Notes: generated by a model not told the origin, from the letters alone. A stretch of DNA of 64,000 nt from Monocercomonoides exilis PA203 (GCA_001643675.2 LSRY02000022.1:1240001-1304000), one strand, 5' to 3'; shown: positions 330-62,110, counted from the first letter of the stretch. Numbers and translations are program-made.

Positions 330-3300
330 ATGGACAATGGAGCCCCTCTTAATTTTGGAGATTTAATATCAGTTCGATACTCCGAAGAAACAAATCATTC
401 ACTTCTTTCTATTGCCCATGGATGCTCTGCAATGTTTTTTCAAAATGATGGTATTCGTCTTAATAAAAGATATCATTTAACACATTTATAATTTTTCAAT
501 ATACTTTTATTTGTTCTATAGATTCATTATTTCCTGCATCTGATTTGTTTCGATATTTCGGACAAAATGTGTGGGAAATTGTATCTGCTTCAAATGCTTC
601 AACTACAAACACAAATGACACAAATTTCACAGTTCATTACGGCACAGTTTGCAATTGAGACTATTTTATGACACATTAATATTTGAAATTCTTAATATTT
701 AATGTTTAAAAACAGACTATAAGTTTAAGGTCTTTTTACGAGAAAAAATATTTAGGAATGAAGAAAGGCGACTTTGGAGGAGAAATTACTGTGAGTCAAT
801 CACAAGATTTTGCATATTTTATTATATTGCCTGCGTCATCTTCCAAAGAAATAGGTTTGTGAATTTTTGTTAAGAAATATTTTAATGAATTCTGTGTCTG
901 TTTAACTTTTCAGGTGATCCTGTGAATACGGGAGATACGATTTATTTAATAAATACTCTTCTTAATTTATATTTTTGTATTGATCCCAATCATGGTCTTG
1001 GAGAATCCGTTAAAAGAAATTCAGACCATGAACAGCCTTTGTGGGAAGAAAGATACGTTCCTCTTCAATGTACGACTATTGTCGTTTTAATAACTAAAAT
1101 TATTATCGCTATTTATTTTATTTTATTTTATTTTATTTATTTTAAATATTTTTTATAGGCACACCTGACAAAACCCCTTGGATAATCCAGCGATTTGGCA
1201 GCAGCTTTGCTGATCAGATATTTCTTCATGTTGTGGCAACAGAAATATTACCCTCAACACACAACCAAAGAAACAGGCAGATAACTTCCGATCCAATTTC
1301 TGACAATGCCATCGCCAAACCCGAAGCTAGTGATGTAACTGAACTCACAAACAACAACACGGAAGATGCCACTGACAAAAGCGACTCTTCCATTTCAACA
1401 GACCAACTTTCCTTGCCTTCTGAACATAACATCTCCAGCAGCCGTCTTCCACACCGAAGGCTGTCTCGTGAGCCGATCTCATCCAAGTTCCTCTTCACAT
1501 ACTGCATCATCCGCTTGGAGCGTATTTCTGCTGGGGCGATTTTGTCTGCCTCTCATTCGCCTGTGTTTAATGTCATCCTCCCTCCCTTTGTGGCTCCTTA
1601 TTGTGCAAGTGATTACGTCCCTCCTTCTTCTCAACCTTCTTCTTCTTCTTCTTCTTCTTCTAATCAGAAGCAGCAAAGACTTCAAAAGAGAGCTTCTTAT
1701 CATTCTTCTTCTTCTTCTTCTCCCTCTCCTTCTCCTCCTTCTTTCACAAATCACCAAACTTCTTCCTCTTCTTCCTCTTTTTCCTCTTCTTCCTCTTCCT
1801 CATCCAAAGACCAATCACACAAACAACCCCTTTCCCTTCCTCCACACTCATCTAAACCATCAGTCAAGACACCCCCCGAGAACAAAGGAGCATTCAAAAG
1901 GAGAGTGAGGAAGATGCTGATGCTTATGCGGTGTGTCAGGCAGGTGGGGAAGACAGCGATGCAGCAGAGAATGACAAAGCAGATTGTCACTCAGAAGAAG
2001 TCCCTGTCTGATCCACACATGATTTCAGCACCATATTCAGCTATTCCTTTTATAAGGACGATGTCTTTATCTTCATCATCGTCGTCTTCTTCCTCTTCCT
2101 CCTCTTCTTCTCAATCACATGGGAGTGATCAAGCTATTCAGAAGAAGGAGAAGCCGTTCAGTTCCCTTCCACCCGCACAGCGTGTGGCAAAGGCAGTTGA
2201 GCAGAGTTTGGGTGAATATTGGGTCATTGAACCTACTTTTGTGCTGTCTTCAAGATTGCATTCTTCTTCTTCTTCTTCTTCTTCTTCTTCTTCTTCTTCT
2301 TCTTCTTCTTCTTCTTCTTTAAATTCTTCTTTTCCCTCCACTTCATTATCTTCTTCATCCTCTTCATCTTCCTCTTCCTCTTCCTCTTCCTCTCCTCCTT
2401 CTTCTTTATTTCCCACTGTGTCATTAAAAGAACTTACGCAAATGAACAAAAACCCATCATCATCATCATCATCATCATCTTCTTCTTCTTCTTCTTCTTC
2501 CACTTCATTTTCTGATCTTTTCAATGCTTTCTCTCAAAACGCAGGTATTTTGCGGTGGAAAGACACATTTCTCATTCGCCACTTCGTCTCTGGCCTTTAT
2601 TTGACTGTTCTTCCATTGGACATATCTCATTCATTGGAAACTGCTTCTTCTTCTTCTTCTTCTTCTTCTTCACAACACAATTTCTTGACTGCATTTAAGC
2701 AGATTGCTGACTCCTCTGCTTTATCTTCTTCTTCTGATAATCCTTCTTCTTCTTCTTCTTCTGATAGCATTTTGTATCGTCTTCGTCTTCTTCCTCTTCC
2801 TTCTTTTTCTCCTTCTTCTTTGCCTTCCTCCTCCACATCATTCCAACCTTCCTCCAATCAGCTCTTCTCTTCCTTTCTTCCTTCTTCTTCTTCTTCTTCT
2901 TCCTCCTCCTCTTCTTCTTTCTCTTCTTCTCTTTCTCAACCCGACCCTTCCTGGTTCCTGTGGTCGTTCAAGCCCCTCCACATCACCTCTTCTCTCGAAC
3001 ACCCCATCCGAATGAACGAGGCAGGGATGCTCTGCCACAGGGCAACTGGGCTTGTTCTGAGGCATGCAACGCTTGCTGGATCACAGAAGAACATATCATT
3101 GATCAGACAGCCAACTGAAAGAGGAGGAAGAAGAAGCGGAGGAGGAGGAGGAGGGAATACAATATTTGCATTGCAGAAGAGGAGGTGGAAGAAGATGGAG
3201 GAGAAAGATGGAGGAGAAGGAGAAAGAGAAAGAGGAGAAAGAAGAGGAAGGATGGGGAGAGGAAGAGGAGGGGATGACGATGATGAAGAAGGAGAGGAAG

Positions 3301-6300
3301 ACAATGGCGATGAAGATGATGGAAGGTTGCTGGATGATGAAGGAAGCGATGAATTTGAAGATGAATATGAAGATATCAATGGAGAAACAGAACTTTTTTC
3401 GCCTTCTTCTTCTTCTCCTTCGTCTTCTCCTTTTTCTTCTTCTTCTTCTTTTTCTTCTTCTCCAAAATGTGTAACACCAAAAGAAACAGGCAAAAAACAA
3501 AAAGATGGATTGAATAACGACAAGTCTCCAATTTTGTCTTCTTCTTCTTCCTCTTCTTCCTCTTCTTCTGATAGTCCACATCATAACTTGCTTAGTCCTG
3601 TTGATTCATCTTCATCCTCTTCTTCTTCTTCTGTATTCACTTCATCATCATCATCATCATCATCTTCTTCTTCTCTTTCAACAGACAATAATTCCACCTC
3701 ATCCACTTCAATTAAGCCATCTTCTGATGCAAATGAGCCCAAAACGCGTTTCCGCTTCAAAAACCTCATTCTTCAGGCATCACGAAAGGCAAAGACATTC
3801 CAAATGAACTCACAACAAAACCAACAAGAAATGGATGGAGTGCAATCTTCTCAAATGCCTTTATCTCCTTCCAGTTATGATCAGAACAATGGAAAACCTC
3901 TGCCTTATCAGCAGCTCCAACAGCTTCAACATCCAACATTTTTATCTTCTTCTTCTTCATTTTCTTCCTCCTCCTCCTCTTCTTCTTCTTCTCTTCTCAC
4001 CCACAAGTCCATCCAAACGCAAGCCCTGCAGTTCATCCACTCCTCCCAGTTCTTCCACACCATCATTTCCACCTACCAGCCAGACCCTCTCTATCTCCAG
4101 CCCGACCTCACAAGCCTTTCTTCCACCAATTTTGTCTCTTTGTATTCCCCCTCAGATGAAAAGGACGCATGGAGAATGACGTCTGCAATGCCCTTTGATT
4201 CTCTTGTGGTGTGTGAGTGTTTGCAGACAGGAAACAGAATTTCGAAGGCAATTGCAGAACACGAGGCAGTTATGACAAGGCTGATTGACCAGGCGAAGGA
4301 GAAGTTTGAGGGGTATATTGCAATGGCATTTCCTGAGGATGATGATGAAAACAATAATAATAACAACAATAGTGCAGGTATTAATGGGGGAGAAGGTGTA
4401 GAACATTCAATAATGTCTTTATCATCATCATCGTCAGCATCATCAACATCTTCTTCTTCTTCTTCTGCCTTCTCTTCCTTCAACAACAACAATAATAATA
4501 ATCCTTCTTATAATTCATCCATCCACATCGACAATGCCCAACCAGCTGGCCACACCGCCTTCTCTTCCTTCTCCTCTGCCAACACATTCGCTGCCATCAC
4601 CTTCCCTCTCCTCCTCTTCCCCACCCACCACGTCCTCTCCTTCCTCTCCCTCATCTCGTCCTCCGTCCACAAGATCCTCACCCTCGTCTCCTCTGAGCTT
4701 GAGCCTTCTTCCCATCTCTTCAACTTCGAACTGGCTGCGTTCCTTTCAAACAGCCCTGTCCTCCTCCGCTGGCTGCAGGATGTGCTGTGTGCGTCTGGCT
4801 TCATCCGCCAGTGCATCCGCATCATTGCCCATCTGGTGGCACTGAATTCGCTTGTCTCTGAGTCTTCCAGGGCTTCTTTCCATCACCCGCCTGTGTTATC
4901 CAAATTCAATCCGATGAAATACTCGTTCTCCTTCAGAGGAAACACGAAGAATGTCGAAGCGATTGAGAAGGAGATTAGAACAGCGTTGCATTCTGTGTTG
5001 TGCCTTTTGAGTGTCATCTGCCTGGCCAACCAGAACATGACAAGGGCTGTGATGACTTCTGTGCTTGTCCTCCCTCCCAATGAAGAGCTCTCTTTCTCTC
5101 TTGACAGCAGACACACGTCGCTTTCTGTGTCTTCCCAGCTGTCGCTCACCAATCTCCTTGTGCAGGCGAGTGAATTAGACAGCCTGGCTGTGTTTTCCCT
5201 CTTCACCTGCCTCTTCTGCACGGACAGGTTGTCGGCTGAAAACATCCCAGCAGACATTTTGGTGCAGCTGCTGTTCAAATCGAACAGAATGTTCAACCTA
5301 AACAGGCTTCTTTGTTTGCCTTCTGTTGCTTCTTCTTCTTCTTCTTCTTCTTCTCTTTCCCATCAGCAAGGCAATCAACTAATGCCATTTGTCTCTCCCT
5401 TGTCACCTCTTTCTCCTCTTTCTCCCTCTCTTTCATTCTCTGACCCTTTCAAAGGAAGAGAAAAAGATCCATTTGATCTCACAACACCACACAATTTGAG
5501 TGGAGGAGGAAACGAGCAAACAGAAGTTGTACAAGTTTCTGCCCTTCTTTCGAATCACAAGCCAACAATTTCACCTCCTCACCTCATTTCAGGCTCCTCC
5601 AGCTCACAATTAATGTCTTCTTCTCCTTCTTTCTCTCTCTCTGCATATCCTTCCTCTTCTTCCTCTTCACTACTTCCTGTCTCTTCCCTCTCTGATGCAG
5701 TCACTGCCCTTGAGACCTCTATCCACATGCTCCGCTTCCTCTCATCCCTCTGCAGAGAACCTTCTCCCAACTGCATCATCTTCTCCCTCTCCACCAGTGC
5801 TGCCCCTGACTTCATCACCCACCACACCACAGGCGCACACGTGGCTATTGAAGACTTGAGGCTGCAGACAGGCTCGCTCTATCCAGACGATGGGCAGTGC
5901 ATGATGATTGGGGAGAAGATATTCAACATCATCAACTCTTCCATCGCCTCTTCAACGACAACAGCAGCTGCTGAGCAGATTATCGCAGCAGATGCAGCGG
6001 AGGCGGTGGAGATGAGGAAGAGAGGCAGGAAAGGGGTTTCAAATAGGAGCAGTGGAAATGACAAAGGAGAAAATGAAGGAGCAGAAGGAGGAGGAGAAGA
6101 TGGAGAAGACGGAGATGAAGAAGGGGAAGGCGAAGAAGAGCTCAAAACAGTTCCGAAGGATGCGATGCATGCGACCAACCGATTCACCACATTTGTGCCT
6201 CCACCAGAGGAAGCAGTGAAATGCTCCCCGTTGGCTGCCGAGTCCTTTTCTGCAGACAGAGCCATTGCTCGCAATCAGACGATGGTGGGTGTGTTGTTGT

Positions 6301-54300: not shown

Positions 54301-54758
54301 AATAAAAAACAATAGTTTTTTATTCAACCGAAAATTAAATTCTATTGTAGAGCGAAAAAAGTTGTATAATCAAAGCAAATAATCATGAAAAATTCAATTT
54401 TAAAAGAAAACCTTTTGTGGAAAGTTCAGAATAAAATAATGTTTAAATAAAAAATTTATCAAACAATTTAATTAAAATACCTATGATTTTTCGCAACTTC
54501 ATTATTGTGACTTTTGTAACAAAAAGAAAAATAAACATTTGTTTTGGGCGATTATTTTAACTTTTCCAAAAAAATTGTGGTGTTGCATTAAACAATAAGG
54601 AAAAATCATTATTATATGTAACTGAATTTTCATTTGTTAACTTTATCACATTCTTCAGATGATTTTCAGTTTGATTCAAACCGCACTTTGGATTAGGTTT
54701 CATTTGAATAAAGGATATGTTGATCTGTTGTGATTTAGAAAAGTGAGCATCAAACAGA

Positions 54759-54841
54759 ATGTTTTTTCTTTTTGCTTATTTCCTTACTATTTCATTGGCA
54801 TGCACGCAAAAAATAAATAATGCAACATTGACAGAAGTTTT
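54759..54841 (+). CDS. 5' part (signal peptide) of a surface-protein gene interrupted by the DIRS element
   Basis: ATG 54759 encodes MFFLFAYFLTISLACTQKINNATLTEV, which joins in frame to 60871 when 54842-60870 is removed. Confidence 0.85.
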
Positions 54842-54923
54842 GGTAGAACGCAGTGAGACAGGTTTTGCTCCGAAATAATGAGTTTGATCTTAAATTATGG
54901 GTGGTTTGAGTGAAAAACTTCGC
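54842..54923. repeat. 3' inverted terminal repeat of the DIRS element
   Basis: 54874-54907 is an exact 34-nt inverted copy of 60788-60821, flanked by imperfect matches on both sides. Confidence 0.9.
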
Positions 54924-55509
54924 CCTCCCCAATGACGTGGAAAAAAGGGCGAGATGAAAAAACAAAACAATAACATTAAGAATTAATAATAATAATAAAA
55001 TAATGCATTGTCCGCTTCACTTCACCACCGACTTCGCCTTTTGCCATGGTCTCGAAGACCAGAGGGCAGGGAACATTGCCCCTCGGAGCTCCCTCCTGCA
55101 GGCTGTGCAGGGATCCGGTGAGGCGAAAATTAAAAACGGAGCAGAAAGAAAAACCACTCTCGCTTTCGCGAGGCGTGGAAAAGAAAACTGCGTGTATTAT
55201 GCTCTGCCTCCCACTCTTCTGCTGCATCAGCAGAGCAGCCCCAATCATCACACACTGCATATTTAATATTCAATTCTTCTCTGTAAAAACAATACTAATC
55301 TTGTAAAGGAGTAGGATCATGCTTGAACTATTTATTTGTTTCCATGTTTCTCTAAACAGGTTCTAGGTGCACTTGATATCTCTGGACGGATTATCTCTTT
55401 CTATCTCCTCTGCTATCTCGCCACTTTTTTCTCGTCCTATTCATCACTCTGTGTCTCTCTCTCATCTCGCACCCAGCCGCTCTGAGTCTCTCCATCCGCG
55501 TTAGTATTT

Positions 55510-55602
55510 TTTCGGAGCAAAACCTGTCTCACTGCGTTCTATCAATTCGCAATAGAGCGAATATCCGAACGCAAGGAGCAGGTTTGCTCCTCAATAATGA
55601 GT
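55510..55602. repeat. Internal complementary region (ICR) of the DIRS element
   Basis: 55510-55545 is the reverse complement of 54840-54875 (1 mismatch). 55544-55602 is the exact reverse complement of 60812-60870. Confidence 0.95.
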
Positions 55603-55712
55603 CTTGAAAACCCTCGTTCTCTTCTCTCCTCTGATCTTACACCCTCTTGCCTAGCACCTTGTCGTGCGGCGGATGAACAGAGGGACTGCGGATGAAGGTG
55701 CGGCCTCTATTC

Positions 55713-58700
55713 CTACTCCCTCCCCCTCTTGCGCTGTTTTCGGGGGGTTCTCGATCGGGTCTTCCGTACTTGAGCGGGCATAATAATTTGTCCTATGCTT
55801 CTCTCTTCGCGTTTCCTCCGATCGGTCTCGAGTTTCTTCTGCAAGGCAGGTTGTCTGCCCTTTGCCAGCTCCATGATGCTGCGGGGAATTATGGAAGGTG
55901 TCTCATCACACCTGGTGGGTTGTGTTATGTCGTCCTCATGATGCGAACTCTTCTCTCGAGTCGGCCCTCGTCTCTTCGAATTCCTTCTCTCGCTCGTCTC
56001 CGCTTCTCCCCCGGATTGTGATGTTTCTTCAGGTAATTCCTTAGTTTCAGATTCTGTATTCTCAACTGAAATTTCTTTTTCCTTGCTGTCCTTCTCCGAC
56101 TTTCCTCCCTTCTCTGCCAGGGGTACTGGGCCACCGATTGTCTCCAGGATCCATCTCGTGTCCTGAACTGGTAACACGGTGTAATACTCCTGGGCTACTC
56201 TAGAGCCTGGCGCCCATCTCGCGTACGCATTGATTGCTTTCCAATCTGCAGCTTGTTGTCTTGCTAAGTGCGTTATCACAGCGTGTCTTATCGAGTACGA
56301 GGTAAATGTGTCGGGTATTCCGTTCTCTCTCAGGACAGCCACTAGTTCTTCCTTAATCCTCTGCAAATTTGCAGGTTGCCTCTCTCTGATATCGAATCAC
56401 ACACGTTCGTCTCTAAGGGTTGTCTTTGTATAATCCATCCAACGTTGGAGCACAACAACCGCATCGATACGTGGGTTTGGATGCTTATTTATAATAACCT
56501 TAACAGTCTCTCCCCCTGATGTCTTTGTTTGTACTTGTGTCTGGACTAGATTCTCTTTAAATATCGTTGTCCCTCTTCTCATCCTCTCCAGCTCTGCTGG
56601 TCTTAACGCACCAAATATCATAGTTAAAATGAGAGCCCTCCTTTGGAGGGTCTGTGGGTCTTTCATATCATGAGTGGCTTCTGCCCATTTCGTGATGATT
56701 GTCAAGTCCCACATCGATTTGGATCGATTGCCTCTTCTTGGTTTCTCCCCCACATAGGTTTTAAGAAATATCTCTATGTCTTTCACGTCAACCTTAGTCT
56801 TCCTGAAGAGGTTAATAGAATCCAGTACCTTCCGTACTGTCTGATTTATCACTCCGCTTGAGAGGTTTGTATTCGAGAGTGTTTCGATGAACTCTGCCAT
56901 AATCCATTTAGCATCTTTCGTTGTGAGGGGGTCAGTGTCATCCATGCTCTCTCTATCTAGAAATTGCTTGAATCTTCGCAGGGCTCTCCACGTATCTCTC
57001 TCACTCTTCTGATTTCTAAGTATTGCTGCTGCTATGTCTTTTGCTCCAACGTGTTCTCCCCATGTTAAGAAGAGGTCTCTCCCCTGAATATTCTCTTCTC
57101 CAGTATAACGCTTATTACCTCTCCTGGGGGTAATTTCCAGCCTTCCCTTCTCATCTTCGTTCCCGGTATCATGCACTCCTGAAAGGTCCCCAGGGTCCTT
57201 GTCAAATACCCAGGCTGCAGTAGCGGGGTCCAGGTCTGCCCCCGCCAGGCTGGCAGAATCAGAATCGTCAGATTCCTCTGAGCTTCGTTCATCTTCTCTT
57301 TCATCACTCGTCCAATGTTTCTCAGGAACGGGTGGACTAGGACTATGTCGTCTTCTGGTGTTCCTTTCTCTCTCTTCCTTCTCATGGAGGATAGTCTCCA
57401 AGTACTTCCGCAGGGCACCGGCGCAATCTGTTCTGAAATTGTATCTAGTGTTCTCGGTGCGATTGTCTGTAATATCTCTGCGACTCCCCCCCCCCCCCCC
57501 CCCTCTGTGCGTCGTCCGGCTTTTTCGCCATCCGGCTGAGTGCATCTGCTTCCGTGTTCTGTTCTCCCGGGAGATGTTCCGTTTGTATCGTAATGTCCAG
57601 GCTGTTCAGTTTCTTCTCCAATGCTCTCAGTGTTGGAATGAGCGATGGTGCTCCCCTTTTCTTCTGGATTGTCCATCTCGTGGACATGTTGTCTGTCTTC
57701 AGACGAATATGATCTATCTTCTGTTCTTTCAGCCATGCTCCTTTCCTTTCCAAAGTCCTCAACACTGCTCTGGACTCCTTCTCGTTTATCGCTAATGCGC
57801 TCTCCTGGAGGGTCCAACTCCCGTGGACATATATCTTCTCCTCTTTGTTCTCTGTTGGTATTGTTAATACTGCACCCCATCCCAGCTCTGACGCATCCGT
57901 TGTCAGCTCTGCTGGTCTGTTCCTTCTCTTCAGACTCCTTGGTCTGTTCTCTCGCAGAGTTTTCCTCCAATGTGTTAATTCTCCTAACATCATTGGGTTG
58001 GGTATCACTGTCCCGCTCCAGCCTCCGCGGGCTATTGCCTGCCTCAGTATGTATTGCATGCGTTTCATCCACAAGCTTGCTGGTGGGTGCTGTAACCTCA
58101 CGAAATTTAACCTCCCGAGGAGTGCTGCTAAATCCCTCGTCTTTTGTATTCTCCTCTTCTTTGCATGTGCTATCCACTTTAGCACATCCTCCAGGAGCAG
58201 CACTCTCTTCCTTTCTTGGAGCGTCACGTCCATCTTCTCTGAGTTCCAACTCCATCCCAAAAACTCCACGCTCCTTGCGGGTTCTAGCTTCAGCTTCTCC
58301 TCCGACAGTATCCAGCCCAGATTTCTCAGGAACTGGGCTATCTCCTGTGAGATCGATCTCAAAGCATCCCTGTCTGGGTGCATGAGGAGGATGTCGTCCA
58401 GATATATCACCAGCTTTACCTTCCAATGTTCTCTGATATATGACGCTGCCCGTCTCATTATCTTCGTGAATACTCTGGGCGCGTCCTTTGCTCCAAATGG
58501 CATCCCCACGTAAGTGTAGCATTGCTTTTGGAAGCTGAAGCACAGAAAGGGACTGAACTGCTCGTCCACTTTGACATGTTGATAAGCACTCGATATGTCG
58601 AGCGTAGTCATCCAATCGTTCTCCTCCAGGAGTTCCACAACTGTCTCCTGGGAATCCATCTTGAAGTGTTTCCCTAGCACTTCCTCGTTTAAAATTCTGC

Positions 58701-59029
58701 AATCCAGAATCTTCCTCCACTTTCCGTTCTTGTTTATTACCATGAATGTCGGGTTGAACCACTTCACCTCCGACTCCTGCACGGGCTTCACCACTCCGTC
58801 CTTCAATTCCTCCTCCATGAGGGATAAATAATTGTTCGTCATTTTTGTCGTACCCCGAAACTCCTGTTTGTGTTTTCTTTCCTCGAGTGAGATTGGGGAT
58901 TGGGGATCTTTCCATCGGGCTTTTATACCACGGCTCACAAGTTTGTCTCCCCCAATCTTCCTCCACTCGCTCAGCCTGTTCACCAGTCTCCCAGGAAGTG
59001 GCTCCTTCGGTAGTCCCACTGCTACGCAA
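55713..59029 (-). pseudogene. Tyrosine recombinase ORF of the DIRS element, overlapping pol; broken by the G18 frameshift and a TGA at 56397-56399
   Basis: Motifs FGALRPAEL, TKTS, TSYSIRHAVIT, ARWAPGS and QEYY. ORFs 56397..57545 and 55713..56366 share one frame, separated by a single TGA (ERV*FD). Confidence 0.85.
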
Positions 59030-59502
59030 CTCCCCACTTCTGGTGTCCTTAGACCAGTCTGGATCTGTGCGGTCTCTTTCCCTTCGAGAGTATCTGCAGT
59101 AGCAATCTTCCAGCTCTCCTCCAGGACGCTCCCAATTAGGGACTCGATAACAGTCCCAGAAGCTCTCAAGGCTCTCTTCACTACCTCCCTCTCAAGTTCC
59201 TGATCGTTCATCTGTACTGTCCCGTGGGGATATACGGAGTCTTCCTCTGTGTTTTCTCTCCCTGTTCCCATCTCGCAATCTATCGAGCTGTCTATCTCAA
59301 TCCTCTTCTTTTGGTCGGAAGGGCTCAATGCCTCTTCGCTGTTCTCGCAAGCTTTCACGGGTTCCGCCTCTGTGATTGTCTGTCGATTGAATGGGAATAC
59401 TTGTTGTGTTGTCACTCTTTCGGGAATAAACAACTTTCTGTCTATCTCTGTCTCGCGGCAAAGCACGGTTCTCTCTTCTCTTTCTGTCTCTTCTAAGCCC
59501 AT
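57065..59502 (-). pseudogene. pol of the DIRS element: reverse transcriptase, RNase H and methyltransferase-like domain (frameshift at the G18 run)
   Basis: RT: WRKILDCR, TLDISSAYQHV, MPFG, IYLDDIL, FLGW. RNase H: TTDAS, INEKE, TDN, HLPGEQNTEADALSR. MT-like after the frameshift: LVHPF..IGRV...ILILPAWRGQTW. Confidence 0.9.
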
Positions 59503-60745
59503 TGGCTCGATCCAGTTGCTGTTCCTGTTGCTGATTCTCCCTGTATCCTCGGGGGAGCTGGAGGAAGGGGGACTGTGAACAAGGGCGCTCTCCCAGCTGT
59601 AGCTGGGGCCTGTTGTGGTCGAGCTTGTGTTGACCTTTTTCTCTGTTTGAAATTTGAGAAGCTCCCTTCGAAACCTTGCTTCTGGAATTGTCTGTAGGCA
59701 AAACCTTGAGCGTTTCTGCCTGTGCTGTACCTCCCTGAGCGCCCGCCCCTGACTGGGGCGAGGCCGAAGGTTGTGGAAGAAACGGGGGATGCTCCATACC
59801 CTGGAGCGTCCCCCCCTGGACGAAAAAAGCTGGTGCTATCCACCAGTCTCCTGAAACTCTCTGGGATGTCCTTGGACATTCCCCCGTCCAGAAAACACTT
59901 CACATTCTCCCAGCTTGACTGAGGGATAACTTTCAGCAAGTTTATGCGGCTAATACAGTCTGCTATTAGGGCGTACGCGCAAAAGAGCCCCCTCAGTCGC
60001 TCTTTCTCTTCTTCCTCTAGGCGCGTCTTTTTCAATTCTCTTGTAGTGAGGGCTGCAATCGCCTTCGCGGCTTCCAACCCCGATTCCAGGGCGGGCTGAA
60101 GCAGCTCGATAACCCGAGCGGCTTCTGGAGAGTCTTTTCTTCCCTCAGCAGTGACCCCCGTCACTGCTAAGGCGTTCCAACTGATGTCAGTGTGTCTTGT
60201 AAAAAGTTCTTCTCCGTCTCCGGGATAAAAGTGTTCAGGATATCATCATTTATTCTGATAGATACGGCTTTGCAAAAGTCCATGAATCTCTTCAGTTCTC
60301 CTGCTTGTCTCCTAGGCGTTAACCATTCGTCTGGGAAAATTCCCAAGAAATCTTCGGATCTATCTTGCTCTTCTTCCCGCTTTTCTGTGTTTTCGGAATC
60401 GCTCTCGCTGGTTTCTACATCGTCCCATTTCTTCATCTGGTTACGTCCTCGACTGCCCCTCAATCGCTGTCTGTGTCTTTTCTTTGCGATCATCTCTGTG
60501 TCATCAGATTCGGACTCAGATTCGCTTGATCTCGATAGAGATCTTCCTCTTGGTCGTTCCCTCTTCGTCTTTCTCATTGGTAATATTCCTACTGCTCCCG
60601 AGCGACTCGGAACTGCTCGGCTTCTCGCCATTTCCTCAATCAAATTTTCTACTCTTGAAAGTCTAATTGCAAGATCAAATCCTCTGTCCTCGCTGTCACT
60701 GGTTTCCATTCTAACAGGATCTTGTGTCATTATTACTGCGGACAA
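59493..60745 (-). pseudogene. gag-like ORF1 of the DIRS element, split into two frames near 60170-60245
   Basis: Position upstream of pol. ORFs 60167..60745 and 59493..60164 merge if one base is added, for example in the T5 run at 60201-60205. The stop overlaps the pol ATG (ATGGGCTTAG). Confidence 0.65.
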
Positions 60746-60772
60746 TGGTGTGTAAGAAAGGTTTATCTGTTA

Positions 60773-60870
60773 GCGAAGTTTGATCTTAAACCACCCATAA
60801 TTTAAGATCAAACTCATTATTGAGGAGCAAACCTGCTCCTTGCGTTCGGATATTCGCTCTATTGCGAATT
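60773..60870. repeat. 5' inverted terminal repeat of the DIRS element
   Basis: Inverted partner of 54842-54923, with a unique outer extension that is mirrored in the ICR. Confidence 0.9.
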
Positions 60871-62110
60871 CGTAAAGCAAAGCGGAGATGACAGTAACAG
60901 CGGAACTGCGATCGGTCAGGAAAAGAAATCATCAAAAGGTGCATATGCTCAATTGGGATATAACAATTCATGTGAGATTTATGTTGTTAATGATGATTCT
61001 CCACTAATTTCAGAGGAAATCACACTGAGCAAGGAACAAGGAATAACAATTGAAGGAGTCAATGCAAATGGAGATGAAAATTCAGAAGTTGCAATTGATT
61101 GCAATGTCAATGTACCAACGCAATCAATCAGGTCAGCTCTATTCACGTGTTATGGAATTATTGAATTCAAATATTTAGCATTCAGATTTTCAATGACAAA
61201 ACATTATTGGCCCAGGTTAATCTATTCAGGAACAAAATCCTTGAAAATAAGCAACTGCCAATTTGTCAGAGTTGGATCAACGTTTCAAGGAGGAACTACA
61301 TCAAATGAAGGAGCATTCTATTCTGTAGCATCTTATCTTGTTGAAGTGAATGGTGGAAAAGTCATAATGAATTCAGTGAAATGCACAGATGAAACATCAT
61401 TTGTCACATTTTCAAATTCTCTGTTTTGGTTTTACGGACCAGAGGAAGTGAAATTGAATGAAGTGGAGATCAGCAAAGTGAATGTTGTTGATGCCTCGGC
61501 AATCAACATTGATGAAATAGGTTTTGCTGTAAAAAATATAACAATAGAGGGATTGAATATTCAAGAAGTGAATTCAAAAGATGGACATGTAGCTGGTTTA
61601 TATATTTATTTAAATTCAGCTGGATCAACAGTGTCCATTGGAAGGACGAGCAAATGCACATTCAAGTCATGCTCCGCATCAAACGGATATTCTGGCGCTA
61701 TTTATCTTGATATGAAACAGACAATGTTTCACCTGAAACTTCCAGCTGCATTCAACTTGGATATCGACAACTCAAATACAGCAAAGTCGAGCACAACATC
61801 AATTTTCATTATGGCACCAGATGTTAAAGCTTTTTGTGAGCAGGAAGACTCCTTTGAGTTTGCAAACGAATACGACGAATCAGCTGCTGGATGGATTATG
61901 GGGGCTAAAGACGAAGATTCAGATCCAGTTGATTTGTTCGAAAAGTTCATGAAATCTAGGCAAGAAAAACAAAAAGAAGAAGCCCAAAAGAAAAAAGCAG
62001 GGACAATTGTTGCAATTGTAGTGCCAATTGTTGTCGTTGTGGTTGTTGCCGTTGTTGTGGTTGTTGTTGTAATCATCGTTGTCAGGAAAAGGAAATCAAA
62101 AAGTGGTTAG
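60871..62110 (+). CDS. 3' part of a type I membrane surface protein (probable pectin-lyase-like beta-helix ectodomain; ~440 aa when rejoined)
   Basis: (F)VKQSGDDSNSG N-terminal motif; beta-helix-like strands (LKISNCQF, CTFKSCSA..SGAIYL); C-terminal Val/Ile-rich TM helix followed by RKRKSKSG. Confidence 0.85.

Follow-up and report, generated by a model that had tools for sequence, protein, structure and literature searches.

A defective DIRS1-like retrotransposon within a putative surface-protein gene of Monocercomonoides exilis

Organization of the interrupted gene

The stretch analysed here (the window) comprises 64,000 nucleotides of the Monocercomonoides exilis genome (C17:1240001-1304000). 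The genome assembly is Nanopore-based (PMC8767320) and amounts to 82.3 Mb in 101 contigs. Within the window, a gene for a predicted membrane protein is interrupted by a defective copy of a DIRS1-like retrotransposon, inserted antisense to the gene. Based on window positions, the locus is organized as follows, with ORF standing for open reading frame, ITR for inverted terminal repeat and ICR for internal complementary region.

54759-54841, plus strand: N-terminal piece of the host gene; ATG, hydrophobic signal-peptide-like stretch, 27 codons and the TT of codon 28; N-terminus the same in paralogues
54839-54841: left junction, with TTT as start trinucleotide (NTT)
54842-60870, minus strand: DIRS1-like retrotransposon copy, 6029 bp, defective, antisense to the host gene
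54843: second base of the element, with a private A>G; this copy reads GGTAGAAC, whereas 16/17 other copies and the copy's own ICR read GATAGAAC; creates GT
54864-54910: left ITR (3' ITR in coding orientation), 47 nt, 94 % complementary to 60785-60831
55506-55602: ICR (circular junction), made of the abutting reverse complements of the left end (55506-55545) and the right end (55544-55602)
55713-56366, minus strand: C-terminal part of the tyrosine-recombinase domain, severed by an in-frame stop at 56397-56399
56397-57545, minus strand: upstream part of the recombinase frame, shifted by a private 8-bp insertion near 57486
57445-59502, minus strand: pol ORF with reverse transcriptase and RNase H; 3' end truncated by the 8-bp insertion
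59493-60745, minus strand: gag-like ORF1, in two frames, which a private deletion of 1 bp near 60200 separates
60785-60870: right terminus (5' ITR and extension), ending ...GCGAATT; end trinucleotide ATT
60871-62110, plus strand: C-terminal piece of the host gene; third base of codon 28, 412 codons and stop; predicted beta-rich ectodomain, transmembrane helix and RKRKSKSG tail

The two pieces of the gene fit together exactly. From the ATG at 54759, 27 whole codons run to 54839 and are followed by the TT at 54840-41; base 60871 (C) completes codon 28 as its third base, and 412 more codons follow without interruption before the stop at 62108-62110. Without the insert, the gene has 440 codons, with both halves open. 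The insertion point, codon 28, is the fifth codon from the end of the exon that encodes the signal peptide. When the frame of the N-terminal piece is continued into the element, a stop is reached after 12 further codons. The GC content is ~30 % in the flanks, compared with ~50 % inside the insert.

Both flanks match the same three paralogous loci with 75-79 % identity (C17:1134372/1134374, C17:955722/955724 and C39:392261/392264). In all three, the bases corresponding to 54841 and 60871 directly follow one another, with neither gap nor overlap. The peptide TEVYVKQSGD spans the site in four paralogues, and the window shows TEV, the split codon TT|C (Phe) and VKQSGD. A reading of this Tyr-to-Phe difference as a "scar" of the junction was rejected, since the paralogue P0019 also carries Phe at this position. 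An earlier note on this DNA had described an element interrupting a gene for a signal peptide, an ectodomain and a transmembrane segment, with both halves open and only TT shared between the two ends; the reading frame, the paralogous loci and the sequence at both junctions bear this description out.

The ~350 nt upstream of the ATG (window 54441-54758) resemble the corresponding regions of the three paralogues, with 75-79 % conservation, and may contain a promoter or 5' untranslated region common to these genes. A GTTGATCTGTTGTGATT..AGAAAAGTGA block is located immediately 5' of the start of the host gene.

Classification of the element

The minus strand of the window copy matches the Pfam profiles RVT_1 (95.3 bits; 95-98 bits when a sister copy is included) and RT_RNaseH (36.3 bits). 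Of the recombinase, a remnant covering positions 110-168 of the Phage_integrase profile was detected beyond the stop (E=0.014). The intact plan is visible in a sister copy, L001, which encodes a gag of 425 aa, a pol of 890 aa (RVT_1 and RNase H) and an overlapping ORF of 1431 aa. In this copy, the pol ORF (1181-3850) is overlapped by the ORF at 973-5265, and the tyrosine-recombinase domain lies in the latter's 3' end, outside the overlap, at nt 4255-4741 (Phage_integrase, 31.6 bits, cut-off 27.1). A single gag ORF of 425 aa is found in several sister copies, and inverted terminal repeats are found in all copies. The ICR of the window copy is 97 nt long. Its halves are complementary to the left end (40 nt, 95 %) and to the right end (59 nt, 100 %) and overlap by AA.

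The insert is a DIRS1-like retrotransposon, matching the published definition point for point, and the earlier assignment to the DIRS type stands. With Dictyostelium DIRS-1 and the 28 elements of the survey in PMC3266345, it shares the ITRs, the ICR halves overlapping at the circular junction, the NTT...ATT termini without target-site duplication and the size of ~6 kb. It also shares the gag, tyrosine-recombinase and pol ORFs, the long overlap between the latter two and the catalytic recombinase domain in the non-overlapping 3' end. In comparison, Ngaro, PAT and VIPER elements likewise combine reverse transcriptase/RNase H with a tyrosine recombinase, but their repeats are of the split direct type and their ORFs usually do not overlap (PMC3266345), whereas the M. 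exilis element has ITRs and an ICR. It differs from the published DIRS1-like elements in that its host is an oxymonad (Excavata counted as unconfirmed in the 2011 survey; PMC3266345), a GC-rich spacer of ~600 bp separates the ICR from the 3' ITR, and a 36-bp minisatellite is located between gag and pol. Nothing in the published DIRS1 scheme corresponds to the spacer (window 54911-55505), which is GC-rich from ~55000 and contains overlapping short ORFs on both strands.

At least 18 near-full copies, the window copy included, were found in the genome. The motif of the right end and ICR occurs 225 times, compared with four occurrences of a control, which suggests ~100 elements of this family, going by the motif count. 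NTT precedes GATAGAACG in 16/17 other full copies, the exception being L018, whose end is mutated. The GCGAAT terminus is likewise present in 16/17, followed by T in 10/17, and 12 further right ends all finish with GCGAATT.

These termini account for the clean junctions. DIRS1-like elements recombine at a shared NTT (most often ATT), complementary to the circular junction, without target-site duplication (PMC3266345). Any such insertion therefore looks "scarless", and the shared TT is its normal footprint. The claim that the insertion lacks a target-site duplication is supported by the flanks, adjacent in the paralogues, and by the NTT...ATT termini. The clean junction follows from this mode of integration and is not a sign of a switch.

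The host protein family

Among 620 candidates in the genome, at least 101 scored members of the host protein family were identified. The named homologues all come from Monocercomonoides exilis. Type-I membrane proteins are the predicted products of this lineage-specific family, which has at least 100 members and includes the host gene.

An AlphaFold2 model of the C-terminal piece, built with 22 family members (predicted local distance difference test score 85.8), consists of stacked short strands and, after them, a long helix at the C-terminus. A Foldseek search of this model against the PDB gave no match at E<=0.001, and the top matches, with E ~0.05-0.4, were all right-handed beta-helix enzymes and tailspikes. 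The Atlas neighbours of the host protein (0.83-0.87) belong to Beta_helix and Chlam_PMP clusters. A surface protein with a beta-helix-like ectodomain is a reasonable lead from this model, not a demonstration. The family of predicted beta-helix-like membrane proteins may merit study as a cell-surface repertoire of this gut protist.

The junction in DNA contigs and in the gene annotation

Contigs from the DNA runs of 2016 and 2022, both from the same sample, cover the right junction. They span 60841-61377 and are continuous across it, reaching only 30 nt into the repeat (the limit of the 31-mer graph). The depth of the junction contig is 38.8, in line with the 35-46 of neighbouring single-copy contigs (X2). 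Among the loose ends listed for the 2016 and 2022 contigs, none lies at 60870/60871, although such contigs drop rare variants. The contigs, in which rare molecules cannot appear, show the occupied form alone. The left (401 nt) and right (400 nt) flanks were also searched separately against the assembly. No copy of either flank exceeds 79 % identity elsewhere; consequently, no empty allele has been assembled.

The contigs also bear on the placement of the element by a chimeric long read. Such an artefact is conceivable in a Nanopore-based assembly with a repeat of ~100 copies. However, the independent, Illumina-derived contigs of both years cross the right junction at single-copy depth, and the gene models MONOS_1875 and MONOS_1876, which are both also in EukProt, already set the element beside the gene. 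An assembly artefact is extremely unlikely.

MONOS_1876 (342 aa; window 60746-62110) covers the C-terminal piece and starts inside the right ITR. MONOS_1875 (1489 aa) has a 73 % match to the pol ORF of a sister copy; this match and its name suggest that it lies over the window copy. Both models look like annotation artefacts of the insertion. The "introns" of MONOS_1876 remove segments that are coding in all paralogues, and they are probably prediction artefacts. As for RNA, the runs X5 and X6 ("synthetic metagenome") were rejected as evidence of expression or splicing: their matches, only 18-47 nt long, diverge from the window and come from another organism.

A functional gene could be retained if the element were removed as an intron. 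The private A>G gives TTG|GTAGAA at 54842/54843 and, with the AG at 60876-60877, the element and two codons would be spliced out (TEVL|QSGDD). The GT (54843-44) is unique to the window copy, splicing from 54842 to 60878 preserves the frame, the same acceptor is used in MONOS_1876, and the family-conserved residues are well kept. Yet the intron would measure 6035 nt in a genome with a mean intron length of 119 nt (PMC8767320), its donor is weak and it has no clear pyrimidine tract. The MONOS_1876 acceptor belongs to the doubtful introns described above, and one substitution in a terminus that has diverged by 2 % is unremarkable. Intronisation is thus regarded as very unlikely.

State and age of the window copy

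The window copy has decayed in place. It contains five private indels, including the 1-bp deletion that splits gag and the 8-bp insertion that both truncates pol and shifts the recombinase frame; the stop at 56397-56399 falls inside the recombinase domain. Over 4150 well-conserved columns, 72 private substitutions were counted (1.73 %), and the terminal branch measures 0.028. The youngest copies have terminal branches of 0.0005-0.0017.

In most copies, the ends differ from the ICR of the same copy by 0-1 mismatch. In the window copy, 2/99 positions differ, one of them being the private A>G at the second base. The ends of L006 match its own ICR perfectly, in a copy that is very divergent; because of such copies, part of the divergence must have been inherited from the source lineage. 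Dating by private divergence was rejected as unreliable for this reason. By the ICR clock, the divergence would be about 1 % per lineage, within a wide error, and a moderately young insertion is the best reading. The term "recent" used in the earlier note holds only loosely, in view of the five private indels, the 1.7-2.8 % private substitutions and the 2/99 mismatches between ends and ICR.

A simulation of neutral decay gave a probability that both host pieces stay open of 0.61 at 0.5 %, 0.38 at 1 %, 0.19 at 1.7 % and 0.07 at 2.8 %. At these values, the open host frame needs no special explanation.

Target sites of other copies and the question of a switch

The survey of target preference covered 29 right ends out of ~100 elements (17 other full copies and 12 further ends, the window copy's own end being included in the reported count). 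Only two of the 29 lie near a family member. One is that of the window copy; the sole other belongs to L004, which shares the orientation of a member and lies 146 nt upstream of that gene's ATG. None of the 17 other full copies splits a family member, the 12 further right ends have no member within ~2 kb, and apart from the window copy none of the 29 examined ends is located at the homologous codon. The family makes up perhaps 1-2 % of the genome, and 2/29 is at most weakly above expectation. A preference of other copies for the same gene family, which the earlier note had put forward for examination, is not clearly shown by these ends. Another open frame, of 172 codons (38 + 133 codons), is split by L015 (G000:C30:253084-260639; also L031 and L032) with TT|C at the junction. 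This frame is unrelated to the surface-protein family.

Elements that are excised by a recombinase, restoring a gene, are known from bacteria: the skin element in sigK of Bacillus, the nifD element of Anabaena and the comK prophage of Listeria. The earlier note had suggested a comparable on/off switch of the surface protein, in which the recombinase of intact copies would excise and reinsert the element in trans. As in the bacterial cases, the element lies within an ORF and exact rejoining by site-specific recombination would be possible. Tyrosine recombination is chemically reversible, both termini of the element are present, the host ORF is intact, and copies with three long open ORFs exist, L001 in particular, among them young ones by the terminal branches given above. 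If excision in trans did occur, a DIRS retroelement would act as a reversible on/off insert in a eukaryotic surface-protein gene.

In the bacterial elements, however, the recombinase still works and the sites remain intact, and excision has been observed. In the M. exilis copy, the recombinase is broken by the 8-bp insertion and the stop, one site is mutated by the private substitution beside the crossover trinucleotide, and no excision product was seen. A second allele without the element did not turn up when the assembly was searched with the flanks. The data of 2016 and those of 2022 alike show an unbroken contig over the right junction, which is a weak test given the loss of rare variants from contigs. 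The scarcity of right ends near the family (2/29), with none at the same codon, also counts against the proposal, and no excision of DIRS elements is described in PMC3266345 ("excis" occurs 0 times). The on/off switch is left unsupported by these data and is highly unlikely.

Proposed origin of the insertion

The preferred explanation, with a probability of about 0.85, is an ordinary, fixed and moderately young insertional knockout of one redundant family member by a DIRS1-like element. A circular cDNA of the element would have integrated into codon 28 of the gene, by a crossover between the circle-junction ATT and the target's TTT. As this chemistry would add and remove nothing, the flanks would still fit. 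The gene is presumably knocked out, because translation from its ATG would end 12 codons into the antisense element. Afterwards, the copy would have lost gag, the 3' end of pol and the recombinase, while the host ORF would still be open as too little time has elapsed. The insertion is probably fixed in the sequenced culture.

Some observations weigh against this explanation. A methyltransferase domain after RNase H is typical of DIRS1-like pol proteins; none was detected here at Pfam E<=1 in the pol ORF or E<=0.1 in the recombinase ORF, and ~150 residues following RNase H carry no domain assignment. If all of the 1.7-2.8 % private divergence arose after the insertion, the chance of an open frame is only 0.07-0.19. 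This mild tension could mean residual selection on the gene. Finally, the C-terminal piece deviates at only 3/82 family-conserved columns, compared with 3-18 in 13 paralogues, the lowest value among the 14 sequences. So few departures are consistent with a young insertion and are not significant evidence of continuing selection.

Further observations on the element family

M. exilis holds a well-preserved and apparently recently active DIRS1-like family, at the ~100 copies estimated above, that is unnamed in the genome papers PMC8767320 and PMC6759080. The term "DIRS" is absent from the former, and "transposon" and "retrotrans" are absent from the latter. No published literature on Monocercomonoides combined with DIRS or transposable elements was found.

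The 36-bp unit near the end of the gag ORF (element ~4600-4649 in window orientation, window ~59441-59490) is single in the window copy. In other copies it is expanded to arrays of 1.4-2 kb (G000:C7:476445-478506 and G000:C30:257778-259189), and because of these arrays copies reach up to 7.5 kb in length.

Two copies, L014 (G000:C1:236718-242863) and L013 (G000:C1:258945-265091), are in opposite orientation and have identical flanks and near-zero branches. Each is located 1.9 kb from a gene of the surface-protein family (C1:244757-245986 and C1:255826-257055). By its sequence arrangement, the region looks like a palindromic segmental duplication of ~30 kb. Pairs of the end/ICR motif only 3.7-4.3 kb apart occur at C18:822736-832379, C25:2158784-2162767, C35:857354-861264 and C58:274684-278763, and their spacing suggests shorter derivative elements of the same family.

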